From NCBI GenBank assembly GCA_020891255.1, contig BQFW01000002.1, positions 2,480,001 to 2,544,000 on the forward strand: 64,000 bases of DNA. The letters run 5' to 3'. How positions within the stretch are numbered: the stretch's first letter is position 1; each line of letters opens with the position of its first letter. The DNA comes from Entomortierella parvispora E1425. Lineage: Eukaryota > Fungi > Mortierellomycota. The notes beneath the pieces are model-generated. The model was given only the letters and a program-made list of their open reading frames with translations. It was not told where the DNA came from and did no database searches. Both the position numbers and the translations under genes were made by a program. This document shows, in pieces, positions 1 through 64,000 of the stretch.

Positions 1-3000
1 GATTGCGACGGATGGTCAACCAATCTGGAAACACCACCCCGAAAAGTGGTCGGCGGGAGTGCAGAACGCTCTGAGACTCTAGTTGACGATAGTGTTTTGG
101 CCAAGCTTCGGGGCGCACCCCATGCAAGTCCTCCACTCAGAGAGAGGCGACGCAGTTCATCGTCATCAGTCGAGGGGTCGTTTTATTCAGCCACCTCGTC
201 TCTAAATGACCGAGTGGCCGACTATCAGCTTGCAGAAGGCGCAGGTCAGGAGCGCACGGAAATCATAATTGCTCACAAATCACCTACACTGCCGATCAAG
301 GAAGAGGAGGTGGAAAGATCTCAATTACTGGAGGATGGCCACGTAAACTCATGGGCAACAGCGGACTTGAATATTAAGCCGGAAGACATGGGCGTAGCGA
401 TTTTATCGGTACCATCGGTCCCTCTTATCGACACAGACTTGACACTACCTATGTCGTTCCTGCAGGAAATTCAGGATCCCGAGAGTCCAATATTGCAAAG
501 CACGCAGGCATCCGACAGTGGCCTTCTTTACGATGACCATCTTGATGGGATCTCAAGCTCTGCTCTCGATAAGGCTCTTCGTAGCAAATCGAATGAAAGC
601 AGTGCTTACGCAACGCAGAGCAGGCGGGACAGTCGATCTCAGAGGTCCAATCGGGACGGCGGCCCTTATTCTCGCGACAGTTTGAAGAAAGGAACGTACT
701 CCTCTCATTCACAAGACCTTCTCCCTGAGAACCTGCCGCTCGATGAGCCGTGGATTTTATCTTCGCCCGTAATGGACGATCACGACATGGACATTGATGT
801 CAAGATTGAGGATGTCGGTGTTGGACCAAACGGACTTTACGTTGATATGCAAACTCGGGGCGACACCGCCGCGATTGAGGATGACTTTGACAATATTGCC
901 TTCAGTCAGTTGGATGATGGCTTTAATATTATGGAACCCACGCAAGGCCCGCCACCCCAGCGCAGGAAAAGCCACGGGCATACAAAAGAGGCTCTCGTCG
1001 GCCAGCCTGCCATTCAAGAGATTGCGGCTACAGCTAAACCTCGCACTGCAGACGAGGTTGATTGGCTTTCAGCCAGCAATGCCATGCTGGGGGACATGCT
1101 GCTGCCCCGGAGGAATGATTTGATGTCAGATCATGCAGAGTCTTCAGCAGAGGTTCCTCGACAACCGCCGCCCAGTCTGACGGGATTTGCTTCTGCTTCT
1201 GGAAAGAAGTTGAAGCCCGTTTCTAAGGACACTCTGGCGAAGTTTGCCCGTTTGCTTGATGACAACGGAGGCAGTGGAGAAACGGGGATGGTCGAATCCG
1301 AGGATTGCGCCACAAATCGCCAGCCCCCGGTTATGACTGGATTCAGTAGCGGCGCAGGAAGGAAATTAGCCCCTATTTCCAAAGACGCGCTGAAGAAAGC
1401 AGCCGGTCTCTTTGACGACGTGGAGCACGACATTGATCCTATGAACATTGTAACGGGTGTCCAAGGCGCCCTACGGGATGTAATCCCACCTATGGTTGGA
1501 TTTGCGTCTGCTGGGGGAAAAAACCTCGCGCCGCTATCCAAGGAAGCCCAGGAGCGGGCTAGGCGGCTATTCGAGGACGAAATGCCATGGACATCGGGAT
1601 GTTCTGATACAGTTAGTACAGAAAGAGAGCCAGTTCTCGGAGGGTTTGCATCAGGAACAGGCAGAAAGCTCGCCCCTGTCTCCATTTCGTCTGTTGAGAA
1701 GTGGTCAAAAACGTTGGACTTGGACAGCGCTCCAGCACCATCCATCCACTCTGCAGGGGGGTTCTCTTCGGGCAAAGGAAACCCGCTAGCACCAATATCA
1801 GAGTCTGCGCGTGGTCGAGCACTCGGACTCTTGGAAATGGAGCATCCTCCAGTATCTGTAGTCTCAGTGCGTGATTCTGGTGCTATGCCTCTGGCAGGCA
1901 AGAACAGCATACATCCTTCAATTCAAGGACCAAAGCCCGGTCAAACCGCGGGTCAGGATTCGCAAGTGCCTAGGCAGTCTGCTGTCTCTGCCAACATGGC
2001 GAATCTCATGATGAAGTCCCTTCGAGCCAATTCTGCGGGGAAATCCTCACTTCCTGGAGTTCTAAAGCCCAAGTCAAAGCTCCCGTTCAAGTCCCCAATG
2101 CCGTTCAAGTCACCTTTGAATAGCGGAACGGTGGCCGCCTTGGCCCATGGGAATCCGAGTGGTAAGAGTGCCGTACCCACCACGGTCACCACTCCAAAGA
2201 AGTTTGTTGGCAAGAAAGCCCTTCATCCAAACGCCAAGCCAAACCTCGTGTCGCCCGCGCCCAACGTCTTGAAAGAAATGCCAGTATGCTCGTTTCAATC
2301 TCTTTTCAATCTTACAGGTACAGTTTCTCTTGAACAGGCAGATGCGTTTCCTATTGTGCCATCGCATTTGCTAATCTATTTTCTTTTATTAACTCTAGCT
2401 TCTGGAGAGAGAACATCTTTACATGGGACCCTTTCTGCCCCTAAACGACGTGAGACTGAGGAATTATTGAGTCTTGGAGTGTATGTTCTGACGAGTGAAT
2501 TATCTTCCGTGCTATCCCTTGTCTATTCTGTACAGGGTACTAACTCCTCTTTTCGCACTCTGAATAGACCGAAGGATGCGTTGGACATGACTTTGAGCAA
2601 AGCCAAAGTTTATCGGTTCTCGGAATGGGGTCCTGAGCAGGCGTTGGATGAGCTTTTGAGACGAGGCGCAGCCCCGGATCTGGTTTCTCTGAAATGGGTC
2701 CAGAATCATTATGGTCTCATTGTATGGAAGCTGGCTTGTTATGTCCGCTCCTGGCCGGAAAATTTTCCATCCGCAGAATGGTTCTGTCCTGAAAAAATAC
2801 TGGATCAACTGGCGTATCGGTACGAAAGAGAAATCAATCGTGCAGAAAGACCAGCTCTGCGAAAGATTGTGGAAGGTGATGATTCAGCTTCACGGCACAT
2901 GGTCCTCTGTATCGCCGACATCTCGTCGGGGTCTTCAGAAGAAACCCAAAAGGATAGCCTCCAGGTGACCGTGACTGATGGGTGGTACGTTCTCTCGGCC

Positions 3001-4456
3001 ATGGTCGATCCTACCTTGGTGCGCTCGATAGAAAGAGGACGACTTGGAATCGGCAGTAAGATCCATGTGTGCCGTGCAAAACTGAATGGAGCCGAGAATG
3101 GAGCTGCAATCCTTGAGTTGATGGAGGGGTCTTCGTCTTCAGTATCTTTGGCGCTTCAGGCAAACCACACGCGGCTCGCCAGATGGGATGCCAAACTTGG
3201 TTTTCAACCTTTTCCATTGTTGTGGACGAAACGATTGAAGAGCATTACACCTGAGGGTGGATTGGTCCCTGGATTGGATGTTGTCGTTCTCCGAAAGTAC
3301 CCAGTTGTTTATCTGGAGACGCTGACTGACGGCATCACCAAGATTAAACGGACTGCACGAGAAGAGGACAGGGCAGCAGAAGCTCATCAGGAATCGCTCC
3401 AGACCAGATACCAGCAGATTGTTCAGGATGTGGAGAAGGAGTTTGGAGACAATAACGTTGATTCGGAAACGATTCGCTTGGAGGTTGAATCAAGAGCTCA
3501 GGAGTTGCAATCGGAGGCTGCCAGGAATGTGACACCCATGTTTACGATCAGGGTCGGAAACTATGACGTGCATGGAGACCGCGACCATGAAGAGGAGGCG
3601 TTGGTGACATTTTGGAATAATGTGCATGCTCCTTACCGTGAGGGTCACCGCGTTAGGGTAAGTCTCACAGAGTGATATGGATCTAAAGGTCATTGTAGTT
3701 GGTTCCGGACATCAACTTATTTTCTACCCTTGGTCTATAGATCACATCATTGATTGCAAAGAAAAGGAGCCGTGAACTAGGATTTGAGGACATAATTCAA
3801 CTGGTGGGCACGCGACAAACGACAGTTCACGACATGGCAGCGGATACCGAGACGATGACATTGACCCATTATCAGCCTCGCACGGTGACTTTGTGTGCAG
3901 ATGTTGGTCAGCTCTACTTTGGTGCCGAGATGGACCTTGCTGTGGTCGTCCTAGGTATGTTGTCACTTTTGATGTAAGGTTGGTTTAAATTGTCAGAGCC
4001 GATGAAGGAACTCATCGTATGTCTTTTTGTAATCAAAAACACGTAGCTTCAAGTGAAGTTGCCGGTGGGTCCAACAACAAACAATACGCGGTGGTCACGG
4101 ACAGCTCGCTGCGATTGCTCCTAGTTGAACATCAGGGACCTAGTTCGAATAATCCATCTTCAACTCCGTTCAAAGTGACATCCAAGATCCTGATTACCAA
4201 TGCTCGATACAAAAGCCACGATGGAAAGCTAGGATTAGACATTGTTTCGTGTCCTCAAAACTACACACAGTTGACAGCCACTCAGGGAACAAGCTCATCC
4301 AACTGGCCGACCTATGCAGAGACTGCTTTGCAACGATTGGCGGCTCTCGTGCCTGGTCAGGCTCCAAAACAGGGCCGTGGTCAGGAGCAGCAGACTATTG
4401 GAGATCTGATGGCGCAAGCGAACGTGATCCTTACCACCATGCACCCTTCCCTTTGA
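1..4456 (+). CDS. BRCA2: BRCA2/Brh2 homologous recombination mediator (5' partial, 4 introns)
   Basis: Frame is open from base 1. Five BRC-like repeats (GF(A/S)SxxG(K/R)xLxP(V/I)S). Helical/OB1 motifs YGLIVWKLACY, QLAYRYEREIN..RPALRKIVEGDD, MVLCI and VTDGWY. GT-AG introns at 2318-2398, 2481-2567, 3658-3740 and 3955-4046 join the ORFs in frame to the stop at 4456. Confidence 0.93.
1183..1836 (+). repeat. Five BRC repeats within BRCA2
   Basis: GFASASGKKL (1183), GFSSGAGRKL (1339), GFASAGGKNL (1498), GFASGTGRKL (1642), GFSSGKGNPL (~1759), each followed by a helix of the AxxLF/LL type. Confidence 0.85.
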
Positions 4457-4564
4457 GCAGGACTCTATTGCTCAATAAATTTTATTTGGATTCACTCGTG
4501 GCGTCCTCCAACACTGATTTTGCTTCCTTTCGTTGGACTATGATTTTTTTTTTTTTTTTTGTTT

Positions 4565-5839
4565 CTAAGGGAATCTACGACCTTCAAACAACAGAGGCGC
4601 TAGAGCTTTGCCAGTCAGTTCAAAGAATTTGCCCACATTTTTGGCACCTCCTTGACCGTTCTTCTTTATGAAGGCCAAGGCTATCAGAGCTTCTACGTCA
4701 CCTTGATCGCCCGCCTTCTTGAACCATTCTTGAGCCTTGGAATAGTCCTCAGGGACGCCACGCGCATGTTTGTAGCTATTCCCTAGGCACCTCTGCGCTT
4801 GTACATGTCCTTGAAGAGCCGCCTTCTGATACCACTGAAAGGCTAGTGCAAGGTGCTGAGACTCAACATCGCCATTGTCAGCTAGCTCTCCTCTGTCGTA
4901 CTTCTCTGCTAACAAGTATTGGGCTTGTGCGTCTCCACCCTCGGCTTCCTGTAGGAGAGGCCCCAGTTTTTCTAGGGAGCGGGAGTTTTGATTCCCACTG
5001 ATATCGGGAGCACTGCCGACAGTGAGATTCTCCATCGTAGACGCCAACTCGGCGGTCGTGTCCTCATCGGGAGCACTTTGAGGTCCGGTACCAATTGGTG
5101 ACTCTATTATTTCCGAGGGGGCTTTACCGATCATAACCTTGATCGGTAAAACCGCTCCTTGCTGACCTTCCTTCTGAGCCACGTTTGGGAGCTTGGCCCT
5201 AATAGACGAGAATGGATCCCGCATCTGAGTGAGAGATCGGGGCTGAGGTACTGGACGCGTTTTAGGTAAGCTCGCCCTTTGGGTTGTCCCTGCTACTCTA
5301 TCTAAGTTCAGCGCTGCAGAAGAGCCAACACCCACTGGCCGCCCATCCTCCTGCGAAACTTGTCTGGTGTCCTTGCTCGCTCCATTAGAGGACTCATCTA
5401 GGGGAGGAGAGAGAAGAGCACCTTTTTTTTTTCAATAAAACTTGATGACGCGGGCGGGTGTCCACTCGACTCCTGATGAGATCGATCACAAATGTGGTAC
5501 CTGGATCGTCCTGGGTTTCTATCACATCTAAAACGTCATCTGGGAAATACCCGATACAGAGAGGACTGAGTCTAGAAATGACGGGAAGGATTTGCGTAAG
5601 GGGGCTATTGGTAGAGGACAAAAGAGGGCCACATGGTCGCAGCCATTTCCGTACTTAATATTGTTCGAGTCTCGTTTGAAAGCGACTGGCGCGTTGCCTT
5701 TCTTGACCTGTGCCAGCTTTGGAAAGAATTGCTCAATGTCGTCCCAAACGACCACCTTGAGCCCTTGTTGGTGACGAACTGGAACATGCACGCTGTCTGC
5801 TGTACCGGACAGGCGAAAAGATTGAGTCTCTTTCTCCAT
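4565..5839 (-). CDS. Short SLR protein 1: uncharacterised ~85-aa N-terminal domain, low-complexity linker, ~3-4 Sel1 repeats
   Basis: Exons 5839-5655, 5571-5501 and 5397-4565 splice in frame via GT-AG introns: MEKETQSFRL...DSNNIK|LSPLCIGYFPDDVLDV...; C-terminal AQYLLAEKY, GHVQAQRCLGNSYKHARGVPEDYSKAQEWFKKA. Confidence 0.85.
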
Positions 5840-6539
5840 CAGTTCGTTCTTGGGTAGGGGTTACTAATGAAAAAAAAAATGGATCGAAGCTACAGGATGT
5901 GTGTTGTGAAGGTACCATGAAATAAAAGATCATGGGAGATGGGCAATAACAAGGGTGGGGGAAATTGAGGGATGAGAAAAAGTACCAAGAGGGCGACTTT
6001 GCCTTGTGACAAAATCGATCAGCCATTGCTTTGCCAAAATTTTCTTTCTGTAGTCCGTTGATGCATTTTGGCTGTGCGCCCAGAAAAAAACCTGGGGAGT
6101 GCCCACCCTCTGTACTCCTTTTGACCTCAACATGCAAATTGTCGGTAGAATGCGCATGGCAAGCATCCTCCATCAATATTTCACCCACAGAGGTCTCCTT
6201 TGATGTTTTCTTCTCTCTCTCAGTAACACTCTTCCTCATGGATGTCGATCGTAAAGACAACAGTCAATCGGGGATGGTCAGTTGTCCGTTCTCCAGAGCC
6301 GTCAGTGTCTGTTTTGTTTGCCACCCCATGCAAGGCAGCGCCCGTTGTCAGTGGGGCTTTGTGGAACAACGAAGGATGGCAAAGTCGAGGGTGTTTTCGC
6401 CCTGGGAGGTCGACTATTTTTCTTTCGCACGTTGTCTTGCCCGAATCCACCCCGCTTTTTTCCTTCGACAATTTCCTCTCTTCACTGTAGCACCCATAGA
6501 CACCACCGCTCGACCCCTTTCTCCACTGGCGTTGCCGGC

Positions 6540-8558
6540 ATGTCGACTTGTAAATGGGCCACCAATCCAGCTCTTGTCCAAAATATCAACATCAGCGGTC
6601 ATGATGGCGTTATGAGAGGACTCAGGTAAAGAGCAAAAACTCGACTGTTCCGTTCCTTGCAAATTCAGATGAGCTCTAACAGTCTCCTACAAACCCTCCA
6701 GTATTGCCAGTCTATTGGAAAGAGACCCAACTGCCCAAAACGAGACTGGCCGAATGTATGAGCAGGGTGAAGAAGTTCCGCAGAGCGACACCGAGGCTTT
6801 GAAGTGGTACCTGAAGGCCGCCCGCCAAGGAAACACCTCTGCTCAGAACAGTGTGGGCGTCTTTTACCGTGACGGAAGAGGTGTCGAGAGGAACTACTCG
6901 ACCGCGAGAGAGTGGTTTGTCATAGCCGCCTACAAAGGACACGCTGCAGCCCAGTGCAATTTGGGAATGCTCTATCACCTGGACCACGACTATTCAAAGG
7001 CCATAGAGTGGTTTATAGCTGCTGCTGAGCAGTCGTGCGCCGAAGCTCGATTCAATATTGGCTCGATGTATTACGAAGGACACGGAATTCCACGGGACTT
7101 GTCAAAGGCTGTGGAATGGTACTTGAGGGCAGCCCATCAGGGATTCGCAATGGCGCAGTTCTGTATAGGCGCAATGTACGATTCAGGACAGGGCGTTGAT
7201 CAGGATCATGACACAGCTACCATATGGTTTTTAAGAGCTGCCCATCAAGGATGCGCCATTGCCCAGTACAACTTGGGATGTATATATCAACGTGGTAGAG
7301 GTTTAAAACTGAACCTTTCTCAGGCTGTGGAGTGGTTTACAAAGGCGGCAAATCAAGGACTGGCGGAAGCTCAGTACTGCTTGGGACAAATGTACCAAGT
7401 CGGCGAAATTGTTCGTCAGGATATCTTGCTAGCTGTTGCTTGGTATGTGAAGGCCTCCAATCAAGGGGACCCCAATGCTCAGTTCAATCTAGGATTGATA
7501 TATGACAGTGATGATGGCAGCCCTGAGAACTTTCAGAAAGCCACAGAGTGGTTCTCGAAGGCTGCTCACCAAGGGCATGTCGAAGCCCAGTATCACCTTG
7601 GAGTACAATTTCAACATGGAAGAGGGAACCAAAACGATGATCCCAAGGCTCTGGAGTGGTACATGAAAGCAGCAGACCAAGGACACATGCTGTTGCCCAG
7701 AATTGCGTAGGTGACATGTACTTCAATGCCCTTGGAACATCCCAGGATTTACTCAAAGCCTCTGAATGGTATCGCAAGTCAGCCGAACAAGGATATACAC
7801 TTGCGCAGAAAAATATGGGGAATGTCTGTGAGCTTACAAGGGGTGATTCTCAGGGAGATCTGGAGGCCATGGGGTGGTACTTGAAGGCTGCTCATCAAGG
7901 AAATGCCGATGCTCAGTGCAAAATTGGCTTGATATACCATGATGGCAAGAATGTTCCTGAGGACTACCAAGGGGCTATGGAGTGGCTTTTGAAAGCGGCC
8001 AACCAAGGCCATACCGTTGCTCAGTGGAATGTAGGCTTGATGTATGAGCGTGGCCAAGGCATTCCTGAAAATCATGAAGAAGGAATGAGATGGTTTCTGA
8101 AAGCTGCGGAACAAGGAGACGCCAATGCACAGTGCAGCATTGGTCTTAATTACTACATTGGCAAGGGTGTTCCTCAAGATTTCCAAAAGGCCATGGAGTG
8201 GTTTGTCAAGGCAGCTGACCAAGGCGATGCCAATGCTTGGTACAACATCGGTACGATGTATGATACAGGTACGGGTGTTCCTCAGGACTATCAAAAAGCC
8301 ATGATGTCGTATTTGATAGCTGCAGACCAGGGACATGCTGCTGCCCAGTTTGTGGTAGGTGGGATGTACCATGCGGGCGAGGGTGTATCTCAGGACTATG
8401 AGAAAGCGATGGAGTGGTACTTGAAGGCTGCCAATCAAGGAGATGTCACTTCTCGGTGCGTCATTGGTGCGATGTACCGAGACGGCGAGGGTGTTCCTCG
8501 AGACCCCCAAAAGGCCACAGAGTGGTTTAACAAGGCTGCTGACCAAGGGCTGTCGTAG
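6540..8558 (+). pseudogene. Long Sel1-repeat gene A (~17 repeats) with a +2 frameshift at ~7684-7688 (pseudogene or sequencing error)
   Basis: Exon 1 6540-6625 (MSTCKWAT...), intron 6626-6701, then 36-aa repeats AQxxLGxMYxxGxGVxxDxxKAxEWYxKAAxQG. The array continues in another frame after GGACACATGCTGTTGCC, where GGA CAT GCT GTT GCC is expected. Confidence 0.85.
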
Positions 8559-8888
8559 CTCGGCTCGATATACTCAGCTTTGGCACGGGTCTTCTGTGGG
8601 ATAACCATTGTATCGAGATGCGTACAACAATTAACGACGCATTGCGCCTTAGACGTATTGAGCATAGATGCGCAGAAAAACTAGTTCCAGTACAGTAGAT
8701 TTTTTCTCTCGTCTTCGTCCACTCTCTTCATTCCTCATGTCGCTTTACTTCACTTTGCCGGCTGTGGATTTAGAACTCTTTTTTATTTCTATCACCAGTC
8801 ATCCCCTCTACTTGAAGCTATGAAATGGGTCCATGGCTACTTGGGCACCATGCGAGTCCCTCCCTGTGACCATCACTTTTTTTTTTCA

Positions 8889-10180
8889 TCAAAAGAATCG
8901 GTGACCTTGACCTTCAAACAGCAAGGGTAGTAGAGCCTTGCCCGCTAGTTCAACGAACTCTGACATATTTTTCTCACCTCCTTGACCGTTCTTCTTCATG
9001 GATGCTAAGGATACTAGAGAACCCACATCCCCTTGGTCGCCAGCCAGCTTGAACCATTTTTGAGCCTCTTTATAGTCTTCAACAACGCCACGGCCGTGCT
9101 TGTACATAAATCCTAAGTTCCGCTGCGCTTGAACATGACCCTGAACCCCTGCTTTCTTATACCATTCAAAGGCTAGCTGTAGATTCGAATCCTTGTCTAC
9201 GCCATTGCCTGCTAGCTCTCCCTTGTCGTACTTTTCTCCCAGTAAGAACTGAGCATGGGCCACTCCACTCTCAGCATCCTGTCGAAGAGATACTACATTT
9301 TCGTATGAAGCGAAATTGCTGGTGGAAAAAGAGCCATTGAGATTCCCAACAGAGGCCGCTAATGTCGTATCGGACACATATGAGCCGTCGCTCTCAGTGT
9401 AAGATCCGCCCATATTGAGATACGAAGAATCAGACCCCTCTCCAAAGGCCCTTCTAGTTCCCAAGAATGAGTCCAATAAAGAAAAAGCGGGTTGTTGTTC
9501 GCCTTTCAAGTGGATCTCATCTGCAAGTCTGACCGTGGTCGGGGCCGTAGGATCTCTCATATGATTCGGCGAACGAGTTTGAGAGGCCAGACTTGACCAA
9601 GGTGTGCTTGCCTGTGGGATTGTCCATGACAGTCTACCCGTGCCTAGGGCAAGAGATCGGGCAATACCCTCTATCTGCTGAGCTTCTTGTGATACTTGTG
9701 TGGTGCTGGTGCAGGTGCTCACTTCGTCAGAAGACTCGACTACAGGATGCACAGGATGCAGAAAAGGTACCGTTTTAAAAATACTATAGTGTATGTATAG
9801 CTGCTGGTCTCCAGTTCGAATCATTTACAAGGAGATACCTGTTCCGTTCTGGCTCTCTAGTACAACATCTAGGATCTCGTCCGGAAGATACCCGATACAG
9901 AGAGGATTGAGCCTAGAAGAACAGAAAAGACTCTTGTTAGGACCGACTGAAAAACCGAACCGTCTCCACCCTTTTTTTCCTTATGTTGCCTTTCATACTT
10001 GTTATTGTCCGAGTCTCGCTTGTGAGGAACTGCCACCTTGCCTTTCTTGACGTAGGCCAGTCTTCGAAAGACCTGCTCGATGTTGTCCCAAAAGACCACT
10101 TTGGACCCATCAACCTGGTTGACGGCGATTTCCACCACGTCGGTCCTACCAAACACACGAAACGACTGAGTCTCTTCCAT
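8889..10180 (-). CDS. Short SLR protein 2, paralog of 4565-5839
   Basis: Exons 10180-9999, 9912-9839 and 9739-8889 with the same intron positions and phases as its paralog. MEETQSFRVFG...DSDNNK|LNPLCIGYLPDEILDV; C-terminal Sel1 repeats ending GKALLPLLFEG. Confidence 0.85.
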
Positions 10181-10828
10181 CTTTAAACTGCAGTATTTGT
10201 GGAGTAAGGTGAGGATTGATGGCAATACGAGAACTGGAGTGATGATATGGGGCAGGGAGGATTAGAGGGGAAGCGAGGCGATGAGGCAGAGTGGGAAAAA
10301 GGGCAATGAAAAGGAGAGGGTAAAGACATGGTTTTTTCCTTTTCTTTTTTTCCCGTCCTTGCGCCTGTTGCGGTCGGCTGTGCACCTGGAAACCCATGGG
10401 AGAATCGCTCCCTGACCACAGCGCTACAGTTTGACGGTAGAGTGCTACTGGTGAGGAGGAAACAAAGAGGACGCACGTGCACACACAGGCTTCTGTACAG
10501 CCTACATGCATGATGATATTGTTGATCGTTCTCTCAAGACGGCAGTCGACTGGGGGCACCCCCCCCCCATGCAAAGCAGCACTGTCTGCAAGCGGGCGAT
10601 TGTTTTTTCCCCCTGTAAGTTTCCTTGTGGAACCGCTTCAAGGCAGCTGTGCGGACGGGAGGGCAAAGCAGTTGTCTTTGCCCTGGGAGAGAAATTTCTG
10701 CTCTCCTTTCATACATCGACCCCCCCCCCCAAATAAAAAGCTCTCTCCTGCTCTTTCACCCACCATCTCTCACCGCAGAACATACAAACATTCCTTTGCT
10801 TAAATTCCCCTCTATCAAAGATACTGTC

Positions 10829-12996
10829 ATGTCGACTTGTACCATCACTCTTGTCGAAAATATCAACGTCAAGACTAATTGTCATAGTCATAACAACAAC
10901 ATGAGAGGGCAAAGGTAAACAACAAAGAGCTCTACAGAAGGCTGCCCCGAAATTTCAGATCCATACTAACGATCTGTTACCTCTTTGTAAATAAAAGATA
11001 CCCAACCTCCCAGAACAACGTCGGTCGAATGTATGAGAATGGAGAGGGTGTCCCACAAAACTATCCCAAGGACTTGGAGTGGTGCCTTGAGGCCGCTCGT
11101 CATGGAAACGTCGCTGCTCAGAACATTGTCGGCGTCTTGTACCGTGACGGTAAAGGTGTCGAGAGGAACTACTCCACTGCCAGAGAGTGGTTTGTCAAGG
11201 CCGCCTACCAAGGGCATTCTGAAGCCCAGTGCAACTTGGGAAGGATGTATTACTTGGACGGCGACTACTCCAAAGCGGTAGAATGGTTTATTGCAGCATC
11301 CAAATCCAAGGATCCGTACGCTGAGGCTCTATTCAATATTGGCTCGATGTATTGTGAAGGCCGCGGTTATCAGCAAAACTTTTCCAAGGCGATGAATTGG
11401 TACAAGAAGGCTGCCGATCTGGGATATGCAAAGGCACAGCTTATTATAGGTGTGATGTACGACAGAGGCGAAGGCGTTGATCAGGATCACATCGAAGCTG
11501 CCGATTGGTATTCCTGCGCTGCAATTCAGGGGTGCGCCATGGCTCAATATAACCTGGGCTTTCTATATCGATATGGCAGAGGCGTTGATCAGAACAATTC
11601 CAAGGCCCTGGAATTATTCACTGGCGCAGCCAAACAAGGGCTCGTAGAGGCCCAGTACTACTTGGGAGTAATGTACCAAAACGGTGACACTGTTACTCGT
11701 AATATCTCTAGGGCCATGTCGTGGTATTTGAAGGCTGCCGATCAGGGAAGTTCTGACGCCAAGTTCAGCTTAGGCATGATACACGAGACTGGCGATGGTG
11801 ATGCCGAGGATTACCAGATGGCCAAGAAGTGGTACTTGGAGGCCGCCCACCTAGGACATGTTGCTGCTCAATATGAGATCGGCACCATATACTTCAGGGG
11901 CAAGGGAGTTGCCCAGAATCATCAAATGGCCATGGAGTGGTATAAGAAGGCGGCTGGCCAAGGGCACGCTGCCGCTCAGTATTGTGTTGGTGACATGTAC
12001 TCCAATGGTCATGGGGTGTCCAAAAATACATTCGAGGCTGCCGAATGGTATCTTATGTCGGCCGAACAAGGATATGCACCTGCGCAGAGAACTATGGGCG
12101 ACCTGTTTCTTTTTGACAAGGACGATCATAACGATAGCTCAGAAGCCATGGGGTGGTATTTGAAGGCTGCTAGCCAAGGGGATGCCTATGCCCAATGCAA
12201 ACTTGGGCTATTATTCTATGACGGCAAGGGAGTTCCTAAGGACTACCGGGAAGCCAAAGAGTGGTTTTTTAAGGCAGCCAACCAAGGGCATGCCGATGCC
12301 CTGTGGAATATAGGTCAGATGTGCGAGAACGGTCAGGGTGTTGTGGAAGACCATGAATCAGCGATACAATGGTTTTTGAAAGCCGCTGAACATGGATGTG
12401 CCGATGCTCAGTGTAGAATAGGCGATATGTACTGCACTGGAGAGGGCGTTCCTCAAGACTACCGGAAGGCCATGGAGTGGTTTGTCAGGGCTGCTGACCA
12501 AGGGCAAACGGATGCCATGTGCAACATTGGTGCAATGTATTTTGCTGGCAACGGTGTTCTTCAGGACTATCAAAAATCTATGAAGTCGTATTTGAAAGCT
12601 GCAGACAAAGGACACGCCGCGGCCCAGTTTGTGGTAGGTGGGATGTACCATCACGGCAGTGGCGTTCCTAAGGACTACAAGAAAGCCATGGAATGGTATA
12701 TTAAGGCTGCCAAGCAAGGAGATATCAGTTCTCAGTACACCATAGGCGTGATGTGTCAAGAAGGCAACGGTGTCCCTCAAGACGACCAGAAGGCAGCAGA
12801 ATGTTTTCAACGGGCTGCCAGTCAAGGACACGCTGCTGCCCAGTGGAGCTTAGGTTTAATGTACAAGCGTGGTCAGGGCGTTTCTAGGGACATCAAAATA
12901 GCCAAAGCCTGGATTAAGAAGGCGGCCGACCAAGGACACGATGCTGCTCGGGCCTACATATCTGGATCCAATACCGCGACGGGGGCTTCTACTTGA
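10829..12996 (+). CDS. Long Sel1-repeat protein B (~18 repeats)
   Basis: Exon 1 10829-10914 (MSTCTITL...), intron 10915-10997 with TACTAAC branch point, then an uninterrupted Sel1 array to TGA at 12996. Confidence 0.9.
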
Positions 12997-16397: not shown

Positions 16398-16598
16398 ATG
16401 TCGACCTGTACTGTCGCCAATGGAACTTGGATTTGATGTATGTGTAGAGTCAGGGTGTAATGAATGTGTAGAGTCAGGGTGTAATGAAAGGACAGCAAAT
16501 TCGCGGAGGAGTGGATTAAGAGGGCGGCTGACCAAGGATACGATGCTGCTCGGTCCGACGTAGCCGGGTCCATCTCCTCAACAGGGGCCTCCACTTGA
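16398..16598 (+). pseudogene. Internally deleted copy of Sel1 gene B
   Basis: Starts GATACTGTC-ATGTCGACCTGTACT (MSTCTVA), as in B and E. Ends WIKRAADQGYDAARSDVAGSISSTGAST*, matching B's end WIKKAADQGHDAARAYISGSNTATGAST*. Only ~200 bp lie between start and stop, with stops and frameshifts. Confidence 0.85.
16440..16487 (+). repeat. Exact 2 x 24-bp tandem duplication
   Basis: ATGTGTAGAGTCAGGGTGTAATGA twice. Confidence 0.95.
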
Positions 16599-17644
16599 CT
16601 TCCAAAAGAACAAAGTGCTAAAAGTAAAGGATTTCAAATTATATCGAGGGCTGGCTTTTCCTGACAAAGAAAAGAAAAAAACTCGGAACAATCCCTCCCA
16701 TCTACGCTCTTACTGCTAGGAAGGAGTGTACTGTTGATGTGTCAAGACTTCACGTAGATCTGATAGAACTGAAAGCGGATTTAGTGCAGTTGAGCAGAAA
16801 CGGTTCTTTAGTTCAATTGAGAGGGGAAGTTTTTTCTTCTCCTTTCCTTCGATGGAGGACGCCAGTTCTTGTTAATGACATTGAGGCATTACTGAATGCA
16901 GAATTGACACGATATTCCATGATCGGTAGTAAGTGAGTGCAATCATTAATCGTGACCGGCCCTATCGTTTGGAATTGCTTGTGTTTATCGCAGCGCTAAA
17001 AAGTTCTAGACAAATCCTTGCTTCCTTTGTTGGTCGCAGTTGGTTCCGCTTCAGCGACCACGTTGTTCGCTAAGGAATGTGATCGCAACAGAAGGCTGAT
17101 GGAAGCGAATAGATGCTGCAGACGAGGGACACGAGAAACAGCCGCAAGGCGAAGTAGGCTGAGATTGACTGCATGAAAGAATGAACACGAAGGGGGGGGT
17201 AGCGAGTTTTGACCTGTCGTCGATTTTTGTCTGCTCTCAAAGTGGGGTCACAACCCGAGTCAAGCAAGGCGCCTATCAGTTTTGGATTGAAAAATGATTG
17301 CGCTGTGCTGTGTCTTCTCATTTACATCCGGCACCGGGCCACACCCTAGAGCTGTTGCCCTCTAAACCAGAGTTCAACACCAACACTACTGGAAAGTCGT
17401 TGACAATCAGACTTGGATGCGTGTCTGTGCGAAGGTGATGACTGGTCTCTGCTCCCCTGATTCCTTTTTTTTTTTGTGGAACGGATGGCAAAGTAAAATG
17501 TTTTTGTCCTTCTTTTGGGAGACAGACCATGCACATTTTCGCTCTTCCACCTTTTCTTCTCCTCCCCCACCTTTCCACTCCCACGGTCCTCTCTTCGTAA
17601 AAATACATATCATCATTTCACCCTCTTTTATCGGTGGTACAGCC

Positions 17645-20594
17645 ATGACAACTTGCGCCGAAGTCATTCTACCCGAGGCGGAAGGCATTAGCCTCAAGAG
17701 CCTTGCCCACAGGATCATAGATCAAAACCTTCAAGACAAGAAAGATCAATGCCACATTGGATTGAAACAAAATTTGAGTGAACTCGAGTAAGAAAAAATC
17801 GAACGGCGACCATGTCAATGCATCATAGATCCCTTCCTCAACCCTTGGTATTTTTGGTGTGGTTTGGCCCGTTAGCTTAGACGGTTTAGATCGAGGAGAT
17901 CCAATCGCTCAATACAAAGCTGGTCGAATGTACGAGCGTGGAAAAGACATACCTCAAAGCTACACTGTTGCTATGAAGTGGTACCTGAAGGCTGCCCACC
18001 AAGGCAACGCATCAGCCCAGAACAGTGTCGGCGTCTTTTACCGTGACGGCAAGGGCGTGGAGAGGAACTACTCCACTGCCAGAGAGTGGTTTTTGAGGGC
18101 CTCTGATCAAGGACACGCTGCAGCCCAGTGTAACTTGGGGCGGATTTATCGCCATGACAACGACCATTTCAAAGCTTGGGAGTGGTTTCAAGAAGCAGCT
18201 AGCCAGTCGTACGCTGAAGCTCGATTCAATATTGGCACCATGTATTACGAAGGACGTGGGATTCCACAGGACTTGACAAAGGCCGTGGAATGGTACTTGC
18301 GGGCAGCCCATCAGGGATACGCAATAGCTCAGTTCAGCTTAGGTGCGATATACGAAGCTGAGAGTACTCTTCAAGACTTCCATTCAGCTGGAGATTGGTA
18401 TTCGAAGGCAGCCAAACAAGGTTTCGCCAAAGCTCAGTATAACTTGGGCGTTCTATATCGATATGGTAGAGGTGTTGATCAGAACGCTTACACGGCCCTG
18501 AGTTGGTTCAGGAAGGCAGCCAATGAAGGACTCGCAGAGGCCCAGTGCTGCCTGGGACAAATGTACCTAGAGGGTGACACTGTTCGTCAGAATATCTTGG
18601 AAGCTGTTGCTTGGTATGTGAAGGCAGCTGATCAGGGAGATCCCGATGCCCAGTTCAGCCTAGGCTTGATACACAGTGATGACAACAGCAGTCCAAAGTA
18701 CGAGAATGCTATGGAGTGGTTTCAAAAGGCTGCCAACCAAGGACATACCGCTGCCCAGTTTAAAATCGGTTCGTTATACCACGTTGGCATGGGTGTTGAC
18801 CAAGATCACCAAGTGGCCATGGAGTGGTATAAGAAGGCAGCCGACCAAGGACATGCCGCTGCCCAGTTTGAAATCGGCTCGTTGCACCACGCTGGCATGG
18901 GCGTTGACCAAGATCACCAAGTGGCCATGGAGTGGTATAAGAAGGCTGCTGATCAAGGATACGATGCTGCCCAATGTGCACTTGACTCAATGAACCTCAC
19001 TGGCAAGGATCTTCTCGATGGCGCAGATGTTTCCGTTGACAGCGACGTCCTCGATAGCAAGGATGTTCCCAATGACAGCGATGTCCTCGATAGCAAGGAT
19101 GTTCCCGTTAACAGTGATGTCCTCGATGGCAAGGATGCTTCTGTTGAGAAGGACGCTTCCAGTGGCAAGATTGATCCCAATGACAATATTGCTCCTGTGG
19201 ACGAGGATGTTCCCAATGGCAACATTGATCCCAATGACGATATTGCTCCCGTTGACGAGGGTGTTTCTAATGGCAAGATTGCTCCCGACGATAAGAATGT
19301 TCCTGACGATAACAAGGTTCCTGACGATAACAAGGCTCCAAAAGATCAAGGACACTCTGATGCCCAATTTACCCTGGGTACGAAGTACCGTGACGGAGAT
19401 GGAGTTTCCCGGGACATTAAGAAAGCGATGGAGCTGTACTCCTTGGCTGCCGATCAAGGACATGCCGATGCCCAGTACCACTTGGGAATGATGTACCTCT
19501 CTAACACAGGCGTTTCTACGGACTACGAACAGGCCAAGAAGTGGCTGTTGAAGGCTGCAACCCAAGGACACCCCGATGCTCAGTGTAGAATTGGGTTAAT
19601 GTATCGAACTGCCAAGGGTGTTACTCAAGATTACAACAAGGCCATAGAGTGGTATGAGAAGGCAGCCGACCAAGGAGTTGCCGATGCTCAGTTCAACCTT
19701 GGATGGATGTACCGAACTGGCAAGGGTGTTCCTGAGGATCATAAAATGGCCATGGAGTGGTATTTAAAAGCCGCAGGCAAAGGAAATATCGCTGCTCAAT
19801 GCGACATTGGCCTAATGTACCGCACTAAGCAAGGTTTTTTTACTCAGGACTTCGAAAAGGCAATGAGTTGGTACATGAGAGCTGCCAACCAAGGCGACGC
19901 CTCAGCTCAGTTTACAGTGGCCACGATGTACCATGCTGGCGAAGGTGTTTCTTCTAAGGACTACCAGAAAGCTGTAGAGTGGTATTCGCGGGCTGCCGAT
20001 CAAAAATATCAAGCTTCCCTATACGCTCTAGGCGTGATGTACCATGATGGAGACGGTGTTACTAGGGAGTATCCGAAGGCCATGGATTGGTTAAGGAAGG
20101 CTGCGGATCTAGGTCACTCGGCCGCCCAGTTCAAGCTAGGTTTGATGTACTACGACAGCAGGGGTGTTGATCGAGACTTAGAGAAGGCACTTGTATGGTT
20201 CCAGAAGGCTGAGAAGCAGAACTTCGCCGATGCCCAGAGCAAAATAGCCGTGATGTACCAAAACGGCAAGGGTGTTCCAAACAAGGACCGCAAAAAAGCG
20301 GAAGAATTGCATATGAAGGCGGCGAAACAGGGCAATCAAATTTCTCAGTACAGCGTCGGTATGATGTATCATGATGGCTCAGGCGTCCCCCGGGACTATC
20401 AGCAAGCGATAGTTTGGTTGAAGAAGGCGGCAGATCAAGGACATGTCGTGGCTCAGCTTAAATTGGGTTTGATGTACATGAATGCCACGGGTGTCACAAG
20501 GGACTCTCAGAAGGCCAAGGAGTGGCTGAAGAAGTCTGCCAGTCAAGGAAATACCGATGCACAGAAATACTTGGATAGCATGGCTAAGGAGTAA
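17645..20594 (+). CDS. Long two-lobed Sel1-repeat protein D (~10 + ~11-12 repeats, acidic hexapeptide linker)
   Basis: Exon 1 17645-17787 (MTTCAEVI...), phase-2 intron to a probable acceptor at 17875, then a 900-aa ORF of Sel1 repeats interrupted by an Asp-rich linker. Confidence 0.9.
19008..19349 (+). repeat. Coding 18-bp minisatellite, 19 hexapeptide units
   Basis: DLLDGA DVSVDS DVLDSK DVPNDS DVLDSK DVPVNS DVLDGK DASVEK DASSGK IDPNDN IAPVDE DVPNGN IDPNDD IAPVDE GVSNGK IAPDDK NVPDDN KVPDDN KAPKDQ. Confidence 0.9.
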
Positions 20595-22121: not shown

Positions 22122-24997
22122 ATGGCTTCTGCTTACTGCCGTATTAGGATCAACATGGCACCTTTAGCACATGATGCTCTGGAGCTTTTGGAGAAGGCGA
22201 GATCCGAAATCAAAGCTGCCCAAACCGCCAGTGGTTCTCAACGACTTTTGCACTATCGGGCTGCAAAAAAAGTCCTTGTTAGCATCGGCACAAAGGTGGT
22301 TACCGCGCCTTTGAGTGGGATGGTCATTGCCTACGAGGACCTTGCCAAGATATTTGACCACTCGGGAGATCAGAAGAGGGCCACAAAGTGCAGAAAGAGA
22401 GCAGATGCTCTAAGGTAGGCTATCTTTCTGTGTTTCGCCAACTTTGACTTGGAGGTGCATGCAGAAGGCGCTCTAACAGTACAACGGTAACGTGTTAGGC
22501 CTGCAGCCGATAAGAATACGAAGACCCTTGCAGCCACCAACTCTTCATCGCTTATCACGCCTCCAAGCAGCGCCGTGCCCACTGTGATTGGAACAACTAC
22601 TTCCACCACCAGTGCTGTGAACACCTCTCCAGCCTCTCGAGAGCTAACTCCCTCTCCCGTCTCTGTCTCGGCGGCCGCTGCCCTAGTGTCACCCCCGTCG
22701 TTCTTTAGCAAGGATATTAAAACGAAGCCCTATGTCTGTTCGTTGCCAGGACAAAACGAGCCGTTTGAAACCACCCGGCAACTCGCCTTTTGTCTCGCAC
22801 TTTTACGACCTTCAATTCAAGAGCACGACCTCTCTCCAGAGAATCTCGAATGGCGACGGAAAACCCTAGAGAACCAGGAGGAGAAGGCCCGCTTGGAGAA
22901 CTTGTCTGAACAACTAATCAAGGCATTCGCTAAGGATGTCATGAAACGTGATACTATGGTCATCGAGGTTATCCAACTGGCGCCTGTGCTCAGTAGCGAC
23001 GATTCTCGATTTCTTATCAAGACCTTTATCGATGCTGTACATCAATCACATATGCTCGATTTTCATTCATTGGAAGGATTGGCCATGGCGATTCAAGGAG
23101 CTGCCTCAGAATCATGCGACTCGGATGACCTTGTGAGAGTTCTTGGATCCCTTCACCGAAAACTTCAGTCCACTCATTCACAGAGCGATCGGTCTCGATA
23201 TCGTCTGCTGGTCACAATTTCCCATGTTTTGGATGGGATGGTGGATGCTCGTATTGGTGATGTCCAAGTTGATCTCCACGGGCCATTGACAGAGCTTCTT
23301 CGAGAGTCGGAGAAAGAGTCAGGCGACAATCCTTACCTCGCTTACCAAGCTGCGTATGCTACTCAGGCATTGCTGAATGTGTCTGATAATGAGAACATAT
23401 GGAGTGCAGGGTTCAAACGAGGGTGGCTAGTACTGAAAGGTGCTGCAGGATGCGCCGAGATGCCTGATCTGACGCAGGTAAAAGACTATCTTGACGGGTT
23501 GGAAACGCTTTATAAAGCTTTAACAGGGGGCGCTAGACTACTGAAGGATGCCGTGGATGCGATTAAGAACAACGAACGTCCCACATTCACCGTGAAGGAG
23601 GGTCTCAAGTTCAAGAGGGCCTGGTATTGGGCTGTCCGCACGGCAGAATCGTATCTTGAGATTGGAAAACTTGTAGAGTTCAAGGAACTGGTCATGACCG
23701 CGCCGTGCCGAGACCAACTCATGTTCCAGTGGGGAATCTGCCAATTGCTTAGACAGTTTGCAGCTGACACCGAATGGGATCCAGAGGCGCAACAGGACGC
23801 AATTGAATTTCTAAGAGCACTCTACAAGGACAAGGCAATTTGGGATCTCCAAGAAAAGGTCGATGAAGTTATCTTTGATGCCATTACCAGTATGGCACAA
23901 GATAATGAGGGTATGAAAATATCCATGCATCACTAGTTCATGTATACCAACCAAAGCCGGTGAAGGGTACAGCACGCTAATGCCCTAGCCCCCCCCCCCC
24001 CCCCCTTTTTTTTTTCGCCTTTCGATCTTCGTTAGCATCCAAGTCCTTCCTGGAGGAGATGAAAAAGCGGAACCCGAACCTCGAACCAACCGCCAATCTT
24101 AAACTATCGCCCTGGAAGAATATTCTACCTGTGGAACCAGCTGAAGCTTCTGCCACAAAGTCTTCTTTACTAAAGGATGTCCAAGCTCGATCTAGTCGGC
24201 ATGCCAACCTGGAGAATATACAACACCGCCTTTCACAGTCCAGTTTCGACAGTGATCACTCAACACCCAAGAGCTCCCAGGAAACAGATATTGTTAACCC
24301 TGGAACGCCGAGAAGCGAGTTGAGCTTTGTCAATCTGGCCCTTGAGGGAGCGCCGGAGAATCAAGAGAAAGAGAGGCAAGATATGAACAGGCAGATGTGC
24401 CATACTACCAAGGATGTCCCCGATGACAAAGATGTCTCCGCTGGCAATGAAGTTCCTGACGACAAGGGTGTTCCCCTATGCAAGAATACCTCCAATGAAA
24501 AGGATACTACCAAAGATCACCAGACGTCTACCGACGATGCTAACAAAAAAGAGGCTGCAAAGCAGTTTGCCGAGGGACTAAAGTTTCATGCTGGCTATGG
24601 TGTTCAAAAGAACTGTGTGATAGCCAGGAACAGGTATCTGAAAGCGAACAAGCTAGGACATGTTGATGCCCCGTGTGTTCTTGGCACGATGTACCGCGAT
24701 GGCGATGGTTTTCAGAAGGACCTCAGAAAGGCGGTGGATTGGTACTCCATAGCTGCCCAGCGAGGAAACGCTCTTGCTTACTACAACTTAGGCATGATGT
24801 ACCATAATGGAGTCGACATTTTCAAGGACTATCCAAAGGTCATGGGATGGTTCAAGAAGACTGCAGATTTAAGCCACTCTGACGACAATGGTGCTTCCCA
24901 AAACCACCAGCTTGCAATGGCGTTGTGGAAGAAAGCCGCAGATCTAGGAAATGCCGAGGCGAAGAAACGACTTGATGCGCTGCCGATAGCAGTCTAA
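22122..24997 (+). CDS. Chimeric protein: helical ARM-like N-terminal region, hexapeptide linker and ~4 Sel1 repeats
   Basis: Exons 22122(or 22155)-22414, 22499-23910 and 24036-24997 splice in frame. Helical region (TRQLAFCLALL, YLAYQAAYATQALLNV, FQWGICQLL) followed by KDVPDD-type units and LGTMYRDGDG Sel1 repeats. Confidence 0.8.
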
Positions 24998-25460: not shown

Positions 25461-27782
25461 ATGTCGACATGCACTGTCACCAGTCCGACGCTGGTCGAGA
25501 ATAGCAACATCAGTGGTATAATCAGAGGTCATGGTGACATTGTGGGCGGACTCAAGTAAGCAAACACACGGTCAAAAGCCACTCTATTTGTCTCTTCAGT
25601 CCTGCAACATCCCTTTGAACAGTCTGTTTTCCCTCTTGTCATGAATTGGTACTCCAGTATAGTCAGTCTAGCTGAAAGAGACCCGGCCGCCCAAAACGAC
25701 ATTGGCCGAACGTATGAGAAGGGCACAGGAGTTCCACAAAGCGACATCGAGGCTATCAAGTGGTACCTGAAGGCCGCCCGCCAAGGCAACACCTCCGCTC
25801 AGAACAGCGTGGGGATCTTTTACCGTGACGGAAGAGGTGTCGAGAGAAACTACTCCACTGCAAGAGAATGGTTTGTCATAGCCGCCTACAAAGGACACGC
25901 TGCGGCCCAGTGCAATCTGGGGATGCTCTATCGCCTGGACGGCGACTATTCCAAGGCCAAGGAATGGTTTGTCGCCTCCTCCAGGCAGTCGTACGCTGAG
26001 GCTCAGTTCAATATCGGCACCATGTATTACAAAGGGTACGGGGTCCCCCAAAACTTTTTCAAAGCCATGGACTGGTATCTGAGGGCAGCCACGCGGGGGT
26101 TTCCCATGGCGCAATTCAGTATAGGCGCCATGTACGATGCAGGAGAAGGCTGCGAACAGGACCATCCTACAGCGGCGGATTGCTATCGAAGGGCGGCCGA
26201 TCGAAGATGCACCATGGCCATGTATAATTTGGGCTTTTTGTATCGACATGGCAAAGGTGTCAAGAGGAGCCATGCCAAGGCCCTGGGGTGGTTCAACAAG
26301 GCAGCAGAGTTAGACCTTCCCGAGGCTCAGTATTATGTAGGAAGGATGCACCACATTGGCGACATTGCCTCTCAGGATATCACCAAAGCCATAGAGTGGT
26401 ATCTCAAGGCGGCCAATCAAAGGCACCCCGCCGCCCAGTTCGCCCTAGGCGTCATGTACAATGATGGCGATGGCCTTCCGCAGGATTATCAGAAAGCGGC
26501 CGAGTGGTTTTTAAAATCAGCCGAGCAAGGAGTCGCGGCTGCCCAGCGCCGCGTGGGGGATATATACCTGTTGGGCAAAGGCGTTCTTCAAGATTACCAA
26601 AAGGCGATGGAGTGGTACTTGAAGGCGGCTGAACAAGGCAACCTCGACTCTCTGCGAGCCATTGGGACGATATACAAAGATGGAAAAGGTGTTCCCCAGG
26701 ACCACCAGAAGGCTAAAGAGTGGTTCTCAAGGGCCGCTGATCAGGAACACACTGCTTCTCTAGTTGCCGAGAATGCTGGGAGCGTAACGGACAGCATCTA
26801 CGAGGATGTCCCTCAGGACAACCAGAAACCCACGAAGCGTCAGTCAAGAGCAACCGATCAGGAAAACTCTGACATTCAGCATGTCAATTCAGAACAGCCT
26901 GCTGCTCACTCCAGCCTAGGTGAGATGGACTGTGATGCAATGAACATAGCTCAGGGCTCCCATGAACATGTGGAAGAGATTCTCGTCGCCGCTGACCAAG
27001 GGTTCGCAGATGCTCAGTACTGCATGGCAAAGATGTACCGATCCGGCGAAGGGGTTCCTCAGGACCATAAAATGGCCTTGGACTGGTGTATAAAGGCCGC
27101 CAACCAAGGACACGCTGGCGCCCAGTACACCGCAGGCATGATGTACAAGCGAGGTCAAGGGGCTATTCAGAACTATCAGAGTGCTGCCGAATGGTTGAAG
27201 AAAGCGGCGAGCCAAGACGACGCTGAAGCGCAATTCGAATTGGGCAAGATCTACCGGACTGGAAAGGGGGTGGACAAGGACTCTCGAAAAGCCATGGACT
27301 GGTTTTTCATGGCCGCCGATCAAGGACACACTGCGGCCCAATACACCATTGGTATGATGTACCTCAACGGCGAGGGCGTTACCCGAAGCTGTCGGCAAGC
27401 TATAGGATGGTATTTGAAGGCAGCTGGAGAGGGACACGCTGCTGCCCAGTTCAACGTGGGTCGGATGTACCTTGAAGGAGAGGGAGTTTTCCAGGACTAT
27501 CGTCTTGCGGAGGAGTGGTTCTTGAAAGCTGCCGATCAAGGACAAGTGGACGCCCAATACAACATAGGACTGATATACCAGGAGGGCCAAAAAGTGGCGC
27601 AAGATTTTGAGAAAGCAATGGAGTGGCTGTTGAAGGCTGCTGACCAAGGACATGCCGAGGCTATGTATAAGATATCGGGCATGTATCAGAGTGGTCAAGG
27701 TGTTCCCCAGGACTCGAGGAAGGGCAGAGAATGGTTCGCAAAGTTTGTCAATCAAAAACGACAGGCCGATGCGCAAAAATGA
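25461..27782 (+). CDS. Long Sel1-repeat protein E (~10 + ~8 repeats, degenerate central hinge)
   Basis: Exon 1 25461-25555 (MSTCTVTS...), phase-2 intron 25556-25657, Sel1 array to the stop at 27782. Confidence 0.9.
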
Positions 27783-63800: not shown

Positions 63801-64000
63801 AGACATATCCTCCACCTTCTCTGAAGACGTCCTTGAGCTCAGCGCACTCCAGGAAAACCTCACTCAAAGCGTTCAGGATCGCCATCTTCATTTTGAAGTC
63901 GTATCGGTTCAATGACTGAAGGATTTCACAAAGCTGTGTGAGTTGGTAGGGAGCCGACATCAGCTTAGGACCTTGAGATCCCGCCCCTGAACTGGCCGGT
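54869..64000 (-). CDS. BEACH-domain protein (ConA-like, PH, BEACH, WD40, FYVE); Bph1/WDFY3(ALFY)-like; 5' partial, many introns
   Basis: BEACH motifs [40 protein letters not shown] and ELIPEFYY; PH RRRYLLRNVALELFF; WD40 LRGHRETVNTVA; terminal CxxC..RRFHCRTCGGVFCGTC FYVE. Confidence 0.95.

Follow-up and report, generated by a model that had tools for sequence, protein, structure and literature searches.

A twice-repeated divergent pair of Sel1-repeat genes in Entomortierella parvispora and the predicted TDP-43_N-like head carried by one partner

Two genes that lie head to head, and do so twice in a row, raise the question whether they encode the two halves of one molecular device or are neighbors that were copied together. 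Such an arrangement is found in a stretch of 64,000 nucleotides (hereafter the window) of the fungus Entomortierella parvispora E1425 (contig BQFW01000002.1, positions 2,480,001 to 2,544,000 of the forward strand), where a short gene on the minus strand, encoding an N-terminal domain (N-domain, or head) and a few Sel1 repeats, is paired with a long gene on the plus strand, encoding an array of Sel1-like repeats (SLRs). A previous interpretation of this region, made from its letters and hereafter called the sequence-only reading, had proposed a shared promoter and a two-component module reminiscent of the plant immune receptors RPS4/RRS1. The cassette is an old tandem segmental duplication of a 4.3-kb unit, located within a lineage-specific SLR gene island. 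On balance, we lean towards the view that the two genes are adjacent mainly by descent within a birth-and-death gene cluster, with no obligate coupling between them; their arrangement is not proof of a two-component machine. The anatomy of the cassette is secure; its function we infer.

The ~4.3-kb unit, short gene (-) / long gene (+), occupies positions 4565-8558 and again 8889-12996. Direct-repeat blocks with 73-92% nucleotide identity extend across both genes, offset by a nearly uniform 4275-4344 nt; this pattern is made up of ten two-copy repeat families (D3-D8, D10-D12 and part of D9) and agrees with full alignments of one unit against the other, which confirms the tandem repetition claimed by the sequence-only reading. 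Its estimates of ~700 and ~650 bp between the divergent start codons were likewise accurate (701 bp for 5839/6540 in copy 1, 649 bp for 10180/10829 in copy 2), as was its claim of conserved intron positions in both partners: the two introns of the short gene and the single intron of the long gene are homologous between the copies and have homologous GT-AG borders. The exon borders were set by the GT-AG sites conserved between the copies and the exons were searched singly; the whole short proteins are the annotated EMPS_01636 and EMPS_01638, while the two-exon models of the long genes are our deduction. The three-exon models of the short genes agree with the annotation, as their exon lengths sum to the annotated 362 (EMPS_01636, P0002) and 368 residues (EMPS_01638, P0001). 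The features of the cassette are:

5655..5839, minus strand: short gene copy 1 (EMPS_01636), exon 1; N-domain codons 1-61, family profile E-value 1.6e-26
5501..5571, minus strand: short gene copy 1, exon 2; final strands of the predicted ubiquitin-like N-domain, GT-AG borders, pieces match EMPS_01636
4565..5397, minus strand: short gene copy 1, exon 3; probably disordered linker, 2-3 Sel1 repeats, conserved C-terminal tail
5840..6539, no strand: intergenic region of copy 1; 700 bp between the divergent ATGs, short conserved blocks only
6540..6625, plus strand: long gene copy 1, exon 1; 28 codons + 2 nt, starts with MSTC, followed by a 76-nt intron
6702..7710, plus strand: long gene copy 1, assembled exon 2; 9 Sel1 repeats, ended early by a frameshift-derived stop
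7689..8558, plus strand: long gene copy 1, rest of the array; 7-8 further Sel1 repeats, open in the shifted frame
9999..10180, minus strand: short gene copy 2 (EMPS_01638), exon 1; N-domain
9839..9912, minus strand: short gene copy 2, exon 2; homologous GT-AG borders
8889..9739, minus strand: short gene copy 2, exon 3; agrees with annotated EMPS_01638
10181..10828, no strand: intergenic region of copy 2; 648 bp between the divergent ATGs
10829..10914, plus strand: long gene copy 2, exon 1; followed by an 83-nt intron
10998..12996, plus strand: long gene copy 2, exon 2; intact array of 17-18 Sel1 repeats, predicted protein of 694 aa

The intron of the long gene is in phase 2 in both copies and splits a codon after 86 nt. 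All four genes exceed the Pfam cut-off for Sel1 (PF08238, 30.7 bits), with scores of 46 and 61 bits for the short genes of copies 1 and 2 (short1 and short2), 263 + 236 bits for the two parts of the copy-1 long gene (long1) and 510 bits for that of copy 2 (long2); the matches comprise 2 repeats in each short gene and 16 stretches in long2, with a period of 36 residues (108 nt). The products of both genes are probably cytosolic. Since the N-domain exon occurs only 17 times in the 38.9-Mb genome, the presence of two copies side by side is far above chance.

Comparison of the copies (dN and dS, the rates of non-synonymous and synonymous substitution, calculated by the Nei-Gojobori method) gave the following values:

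N-domain exon: dS 0.81, dN/dS 0.37
Linker of the short gene: dS 2.4 (saturated), dN/dS 0.30
Sel1 repeats and tail of the short gene: dS 1.2, dN/dS 0.19
Long gene, first half: dS 1.34, dN/dS 0.21
Long gene, second half: dS 0.89, dN/dS 0.27

Thus, the duplication is old (dS 0.8-1.3, the saturated linker apart) and the four genes are mostly under purifying selection. The genes were indeed duplicated as a pair, as the sequence-only reading had it, and across a dS of ~1 purifying selection has maintained all four reading frames of the two copies. The shared promoter is a different matter. The intergenic DNA of the two copies can barely be aligned, except for a few short blocks (e.g. around 6375-6405), and the intergenic regions of three loci have only 3 8-mers in common, which is above the level of mononucleotide shuffles, yet weak. 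A shared-promoter motif was therefore rejected, these 8-mers and one short block being too weak to define it. The spacer is poorly conserved and the long gene has a conserved start and proximal upstream region of its own, so this part of the sequence-only reading was not upheld.

The head of the short protein has no Pfam match in its N-terminal exon, and a sequence-level identity could not be assigned to it: there is neither PF18694 (TDP-43_N) nor any other Pfam match at E<=10 in 7 N-domain-only members of its family, PF18694 is not among the 25 of 26 Pfam families listed for 66 scanned members, and a sequence search of the PDB with head-family proteins returned only matches to leucine-rich repeats (LRRs). 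A Crinkler header was considered and rejected as well, since no Crinkler-family match was found in the 66 members (25 of 26 families listed) or in the 7 members at E<=10. The structure prediction is more informative. The AlphaFold2 model of the head, built from 53 family sequences, has a predicted local distance difference test score (pLDDT) >90 over residues 1-80 and exhibits a ubiquitin-like β-grasp. Its best structural match is the N-terminal domain (NTD) of TDP-43 (Z 8.6, root-mean-square deviation 2.0 Å, 70 of 80 residues aligned), and the runners-up (Z 5-6.6) include the ubiquitin-like domain (ULD) of TBK1/IKK, DCX, PB1, Par3-NTD and CIDE-N; Foldseek assigned to the model a probability of 0.99. 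As an independent line of evidence, the ESM Atlas clusters nearest to residues 1-85 of P0002 are those of TDP-43_N (score 0.93, template modelling (TM) score 0.65-0.84, with 0.65-0.68 to TDP-43 models), and PF18694 is annotated on 21% of one Mucoromycota cluster near the head. The head is thus predicted to adopt a ubiquitin-like fold closest to the TDP-43 NTD, within the fold group of DIX, PB1 and Par3-NTD.

Among 1.84 billion representatives, a profile of the N-domain exons retrieved at least 489 clusters (E<=1e-3), and the domain nearly always covers residues 2-59. The members looked up come from Mortierellaceae (10/10), so far the only known source of the family; nine are named 'hypothetical protein' and one 'Vacuolar protein 8'. 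All 17 copies in the E. parvispora genome have an intron at the same position, after an RDSNG-type motif, and 8 of the 17 genes are found in tandem clusters, so local duplication is common in this family. Downstream of the head there are ribonuclease-inhibitor (RI)-type LRRs (LRR_6) or Sel1 arrays and rarely NACHT or NB-ARC/TPR, but the commonest partner is a Cys/His-rich module without a Pfam family. This module (~300 residues, in 57 of ~150 family representatives; e.g. L021:99-1040 on contig C1 of E. parvispora) exhibits an invariant CxCGxHT motif, several conserved His residues and a GHVKWVC-type motif. Its AlphaFold2 model (pLDDT 78) gave no convincing structural match apart from the LRR-like final ~90 residues. 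Genes with the head/module/LRR_6 architecture also occur in tandem: there are four copies on contig C1 (2625261-2650300), arranged in two pairs 13 kb apart with a spacing of 4.0-4.4 kb, and two copies on contig C7 (438922-445600) with a spacing of 4.1 kb.

In the short protein the head is followed by a linker of ~150 residues, which is poorly conserved and therefore probably disordered, by 2-3 Sel1 repeats and by a C-terminal tail with hardly any variation among three sequences. A word search with the last exon matched, outside the repeat part, only the two short proteins of the window. Proteins composed of the head, a linker and an array of 7-19 Sel1 repeats are encoded on E. parvispora contigs C10 and C5 and in L. 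elongata, and a protein of M. claussenii (P0040) combines head, Sel1 repeats and, in addition, the Cys/His module. The short genes, minimal members of the head family, seem to mark the lower limit of this series. We also considered the origin of the pair by inversion or fission of one head+Sel1-array gene and rejected it, as the Sel1 repeats of the short gene are no closer to the neighboring array than to any other array (35-41% aa identity).

If the pairing were obligate, it might be expected at other loci of the family. Of the 17 N-domain loci, two are in the window, 13 were examined at ±10 kb and two (on contigs C2 and C12) were covered at ±1.5 kb only. A divergent Sel1 array upstream of the N-domain gene was found at none of the 13 other loci at ±10 kb, two of which have a Sel1 array fused downstream and the rest LRRs or unknown domains; nor was a divergent Sel1 neighbor present at the N+Sel1 genes of L. 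elongata and M. claussenii (0/2). The sequence-only reading had named homologs that are usually unlinked and not co-expressed as the outcome that would speak against it; as far as linkage is concerned, this is what the 13 own and two foreign loci reveal (RNA-seq exists for the strain).

The long partner tells a similar story. It is a Sel1-only gene according to the Pfam scan, with 17-18 repeats behind a first exon of 29 residues, and it belongs to a local family of four long paralogs within a 23-kb island (starts at 6540, 10829, 25461 and, in degenerate form, 16398). The start context GATACTGTC ATG TCG AC and an MSTC-type first exon are common to the four, and ~270 bp upstream of long2 are found also upstream of 16398 and partly upstream of 25461. 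The two further paralogs are:

16398..20594, plus strand: long3; degenerate exon-1 remnant at 16398, main array at 17859-20594, without a short partner
25461..27782, plus strand: long4; same exon-1 start, without a divergent short partner

Obligate pairing is doubtful because long3 and long4 share the start region and proximal upstream DNA yet have no short partner. The long genes are related in a mosaic fashion: over its second half, long1 clearly matches long2 best (62% vs 46-47% to the other paralogs), while its first half is more similar to long3/long4 (63-64%) than to long2 (58%). The co-phylogeny and recurrent linkage expected by the sequence-only reading are thus contradicted by the unpaired long3 and long4 and by the affinity of the N-terminal half of long1. 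Sel1 repeats are abundant in this genome (at least 626 candidates in dozens of arrays), and the long arrays have thousands of relatives at ~40-47% identity in bacteria and fungi; a search with the long array for orthologous loci was saturated by generic SLR proteins, to the point that even the genes of the window were not listed.

Two genes of the island deserve a separate comment. The MSTC-type first exon of long3 (16398-16480) is interrupted by a stop 12 codons in; behind it lie a short tandem repeat (~27-nt units) and a lone Sel1 unit at 16488-16556, and the main array of 21 repeats begins ~1.4 kb further on; the break may be due to an insertion into the gene. At 22575-24997 there is a gene with an ARM_5 domain (PF23948), a long low-complexity linker and 3 Sel1 repeats, with long4 next in tandem ~460 bp on. 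These two share the logic of the short gene, i.e. a globular head, a linker and few Sel1 repeats beside a long array, but the head and the orientation differ.

The island begins next to a BRCA2/Brh2 homolog (46-4460; BRC repeat, helical and OB1 domains), which lies tail-to-tail with the short gene of copy 1 and served as a synteny anchor. Just past the island there is an open reading frame (ORF) of 625 aa without a Pfam match (28128-30005, minus strand), whose ortholog in Gryganskiella cystojenkinii is found ~8 kb from BRCA2. The island is therefore a lineage-specific insertion or expansion, sitting between BRCA2 and the next conserved gene. Within 10 kb of BRCA2 no N-domain+Sel1 cassette or Sel1 array was found in G. 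cystojenkinii, E. lignicola, E. beljakovae, E. chlamydospora and Dissophora globulifera. In E. beljakovae a divergent head exon is located ~6 kb from BRCA2 (L124:14250-14642), with no Sel1 nearby; it is not an ortholog of the short gene. A metagenome scan for more orthologous loci yielded generic Sel1 patterns and bacterial-type SLR proteins only. Further away in the window, an arrestin-domain gene (41423-43252) and a large gene with a BEACH domain (55245-63960, minus strand; WD40, BEACH, PH_BEACH, Arm_4 Armadillo-like and Laminin_G_3) are ordinary conserved eukaryotic genes.

What could the products do, if the adjacency is mainly a matter of descent? The NTD of TDP-43, DIX and PB1 are homotypic head-to-tail assembly domains, and SLR proteins act as adaptors. 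By analogy, the head could be a homotypic assembly or adaptor domain, which would recruit the short protein into complexes with other family members (of the head / unknown module / LRR or Sel1 array type). The short protein would then be an adaptor, in which a flexible linker connects the head to a small binding surface formed by the Sel1 repeats, and the Sel1 parts, including the long protein, would serve as protein-binding scaffolds. Of the role of adaptor or effector suggested by the sequence-only reading for the short protein, the adaptor half gains some plausibility from the predicted ubiquitin-like fold and from the N-domain/Sel1 fusions found elsewhere.

Several observations weigh against our preferred explanation, including its proposed mechanism. 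One orthologous locus was found, in a 3.3-kb Logan contig (L038; sample ERR15945747) from another organism. Its short gene agrees with those of the window in both intron positions and in the C-terminal tail, its divergent Sel1 array is 72% identical to positions 6727-7253 of the window, and on the other side a stretch matches the flank of copy 1 that faces BRCA2 at 84% identity. With a start-to-start spacing of ~715 bp, the head-to-head order, the spacing and the introns are all conserved. The search of related genomes for the same divergent pairing, recommended by the sequence-only reading, has therefore one positive answer to set against the 13 own and two foreign loci without it. In the N-domain tree short1 pairs with the L038 protein, with short2 as sister to both (support 99/98 and 97/79), so the duplication predates that split and both pairs have been intact since; neutral adjacency does not require such a long persistence of both intact pairs. 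Moreover, the N-domain/Sel1-array fusions (on C10 and C5, P0020 and P0040) suggest, by the Rosetta-stone logic, a functional link between the two domain types. Finally, the oligomerization of the head would follow only from a similarity of folds, at 17% identity to TDP-43 and with no Pfam match.

These observations are the strength of the first alternative, which we regard as possible but hold only tentatively, namely that the two genes truly form a two-component module, equivalent to a head/linker/Sel1-array protein divided over two polypeptides; it retains the sensor/adaptor idea of the sequence-only reading but drops the NLR label. The long Sel1 solenoid would bind a ligand or client, and the short protein would dock via its Sel1 tail and signal by polymerization of the head. 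The pair was duplicated and kept as a unit with four frames under purifying selection, the arrangement persists in the L038 organism across a split younger than the duplication, and fused versions exist in E. parvispora and in other genera. The 2-3 Sel1 repeats and the C-terminal tail, which would form the docking part, are the best-conserved portion of the short protein (dN/dS 0.19), and, in keeping with the relationship of short1 to short2, long1 has its specific closest relative in long2 over the C-terminal half. However, the pairing is of single origin, given its absence from the other own and foreign loci, long3 and long4 use the same start region without a short partner, and the N-terminal half of long1 goes with long3/long4 rather than with long2. 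In addition, long1 is frameshifted beside an intact short1, the Sel1 repeats of the short gene show no special similarity to the neighboring array, and the intergenic DNA is hardly conserved.

The frameshift itself leads to another, unlikely explanation: copy 1 may be a redundant duplicate heading for loss, with the defect in long1 as its first lesion. Compared with copy 2, long1 contains two extra bases (AT, 7687-7688) directly after Q-G-H codons, so that the repeat spacing at this site is 110 nt and not 108. The resulting +2 frameshift makes the frame from 6702 end at a stop at 7708-7710, nine repeats in, and splits the array into 6702-7710 and 7689-8558. Hence the statement of the sequence-only reading that each unit holds a long SLR array gene is valid for the intact copy 2, but copy 1 is not one open frame. 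Besides being cut short by the insertion, long1 ends ~2 repeats before the end of its counterpart in copy 2, which would fit decay. On the other hand, the 286 codons past the shift are free of stops and have a dN/dS of 0.27 versus copy 2, so the AT is either a very recent lesion or an error of assembly or polishing in repetitive DNA (the E1425 assembly was made from Nanopore reads and polished with Nanopolish and Pilon). Furthermore, short1 is intact and constrained, and it is copy 1 that has the clear ortholog in L038.

An equally improbable, though more far-reaching, idea extends the module to the whole head family. The head might be the signaling or assembly domain of a surveillance system specific to Mortierellaceae and devoid of the nucleotide-binding oligomerization domain (NOD), built of head / Cys-His module / LRR or Sel1 sensors, in which the cassette would be a split receptor, with a small head+Sel1 adaptor reading a free Sel1 sensor. 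The head would then be analogous to the death-fold or TIR domains in the pathways of nucleotide-binding leucine-rich-repeat receptors (NLRs), and a role toward the endohyphal bacteria hosted by E. parvispora is conceivable. Least probable by far is a paired immune receptor of the RPS4/RRS1 kind, i.e. a head-to-head NLR sensor/executor couple: the genes are head to head with ATGs <1 kb apart and some head-family members carry NACHT, NB-ARC or RI-type LRRs, but no exon of the four genes encodes NB-ARC, NACHT or another NTPase domain (Pfam searches with all exon ORFs gave Sel1/TPR-type matches only, whereby an NLR pair was rejected), an integrated decoy domain is lacking, no NOD fold can be recognized in the module that usually forms the middle of the family's proteins, and the resemblance seen by the sequence-only reading thus fails on the defining nucleotide-binding domain.

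Taken alone, the cassette is a duplicated, lineage-specific pair within a growing cluster of Sel1-repeat genes, and events of this sort are common; none of its ingredients (divergent pairing, tandem duplication, expansion of Sel1 genes) is new in kind. The uncharacterized element is the TDP-43_N-like head family of Mortierellaceae, with its NLR-like modularity without a recognizable NOD, and the use of the cassette is to direct attention to this head, placed atop at least 489 protein clusters. The literature found on Sel1 and Mortierella or on NLRs and Mortierellomycotina makes no mention of the head family, and the accession PF18694 appeared in no paper found. Should homotypic assembly prove to be the function of the head, the short/long pair (362 and 694 aa, available as two natural paralogous pairs) would offer a small and tractable system. 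It could then be used to determine whether repeat sensors and adaptors act as separate polypeptides in early-diverging fungi.

How does the cassette compare with systems already described? It resembles the paired plant NLRs (RPS4/RRS1 and RGA4/RGA5) in being divergent, with a spacing of 649-715 bp, and in having been duplicated and retained as a pair, but it differs from them in the lack of a nucleotide-binding domain and of a decoy, and in that the long partner, which has a start region of its own, is also found unpaired. The short divergent spacer typical of RPS4/RRS1 is conserved here across copies and species as an arrangement (701, 649 and 715 bp), while its sequence is poorly conserved. 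With SLR proteins (PF08238; Sel1L/Hrd3, Skt5/Chs4, HcpC/LpnE) both genes share the 36-residue period and scores far above the cut-off; unlike them, the long genes have no signal peptide or other domain and form a lineage-specific island of four paralogs with a private first exon. The predicted β-grasp of the head can be superposed on the TDP-43 NTD (PF18694), and both are found at the extreme N-terminus of multidomain proteins; however, the head is only 17% identical to it, has no PF18694 sequence match, and is joined to LRRs, Sel1 repeats, NACHT or the unknown module rather than to RNA recognition motifs (RRMs). Further comparable systems are the NLR-like tripartite proteins of fungi and the Crinkler-type ubiquitin-like header domains. 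From these the head family departs in that most of its members have the Cys/His-rich middle module in place of a NOD and the short genes have no middle module, but it resembles them in recombining a small N-terminal domain with varied modules and C-terminal repeats, occasionally including NACHT or NB-ARC.

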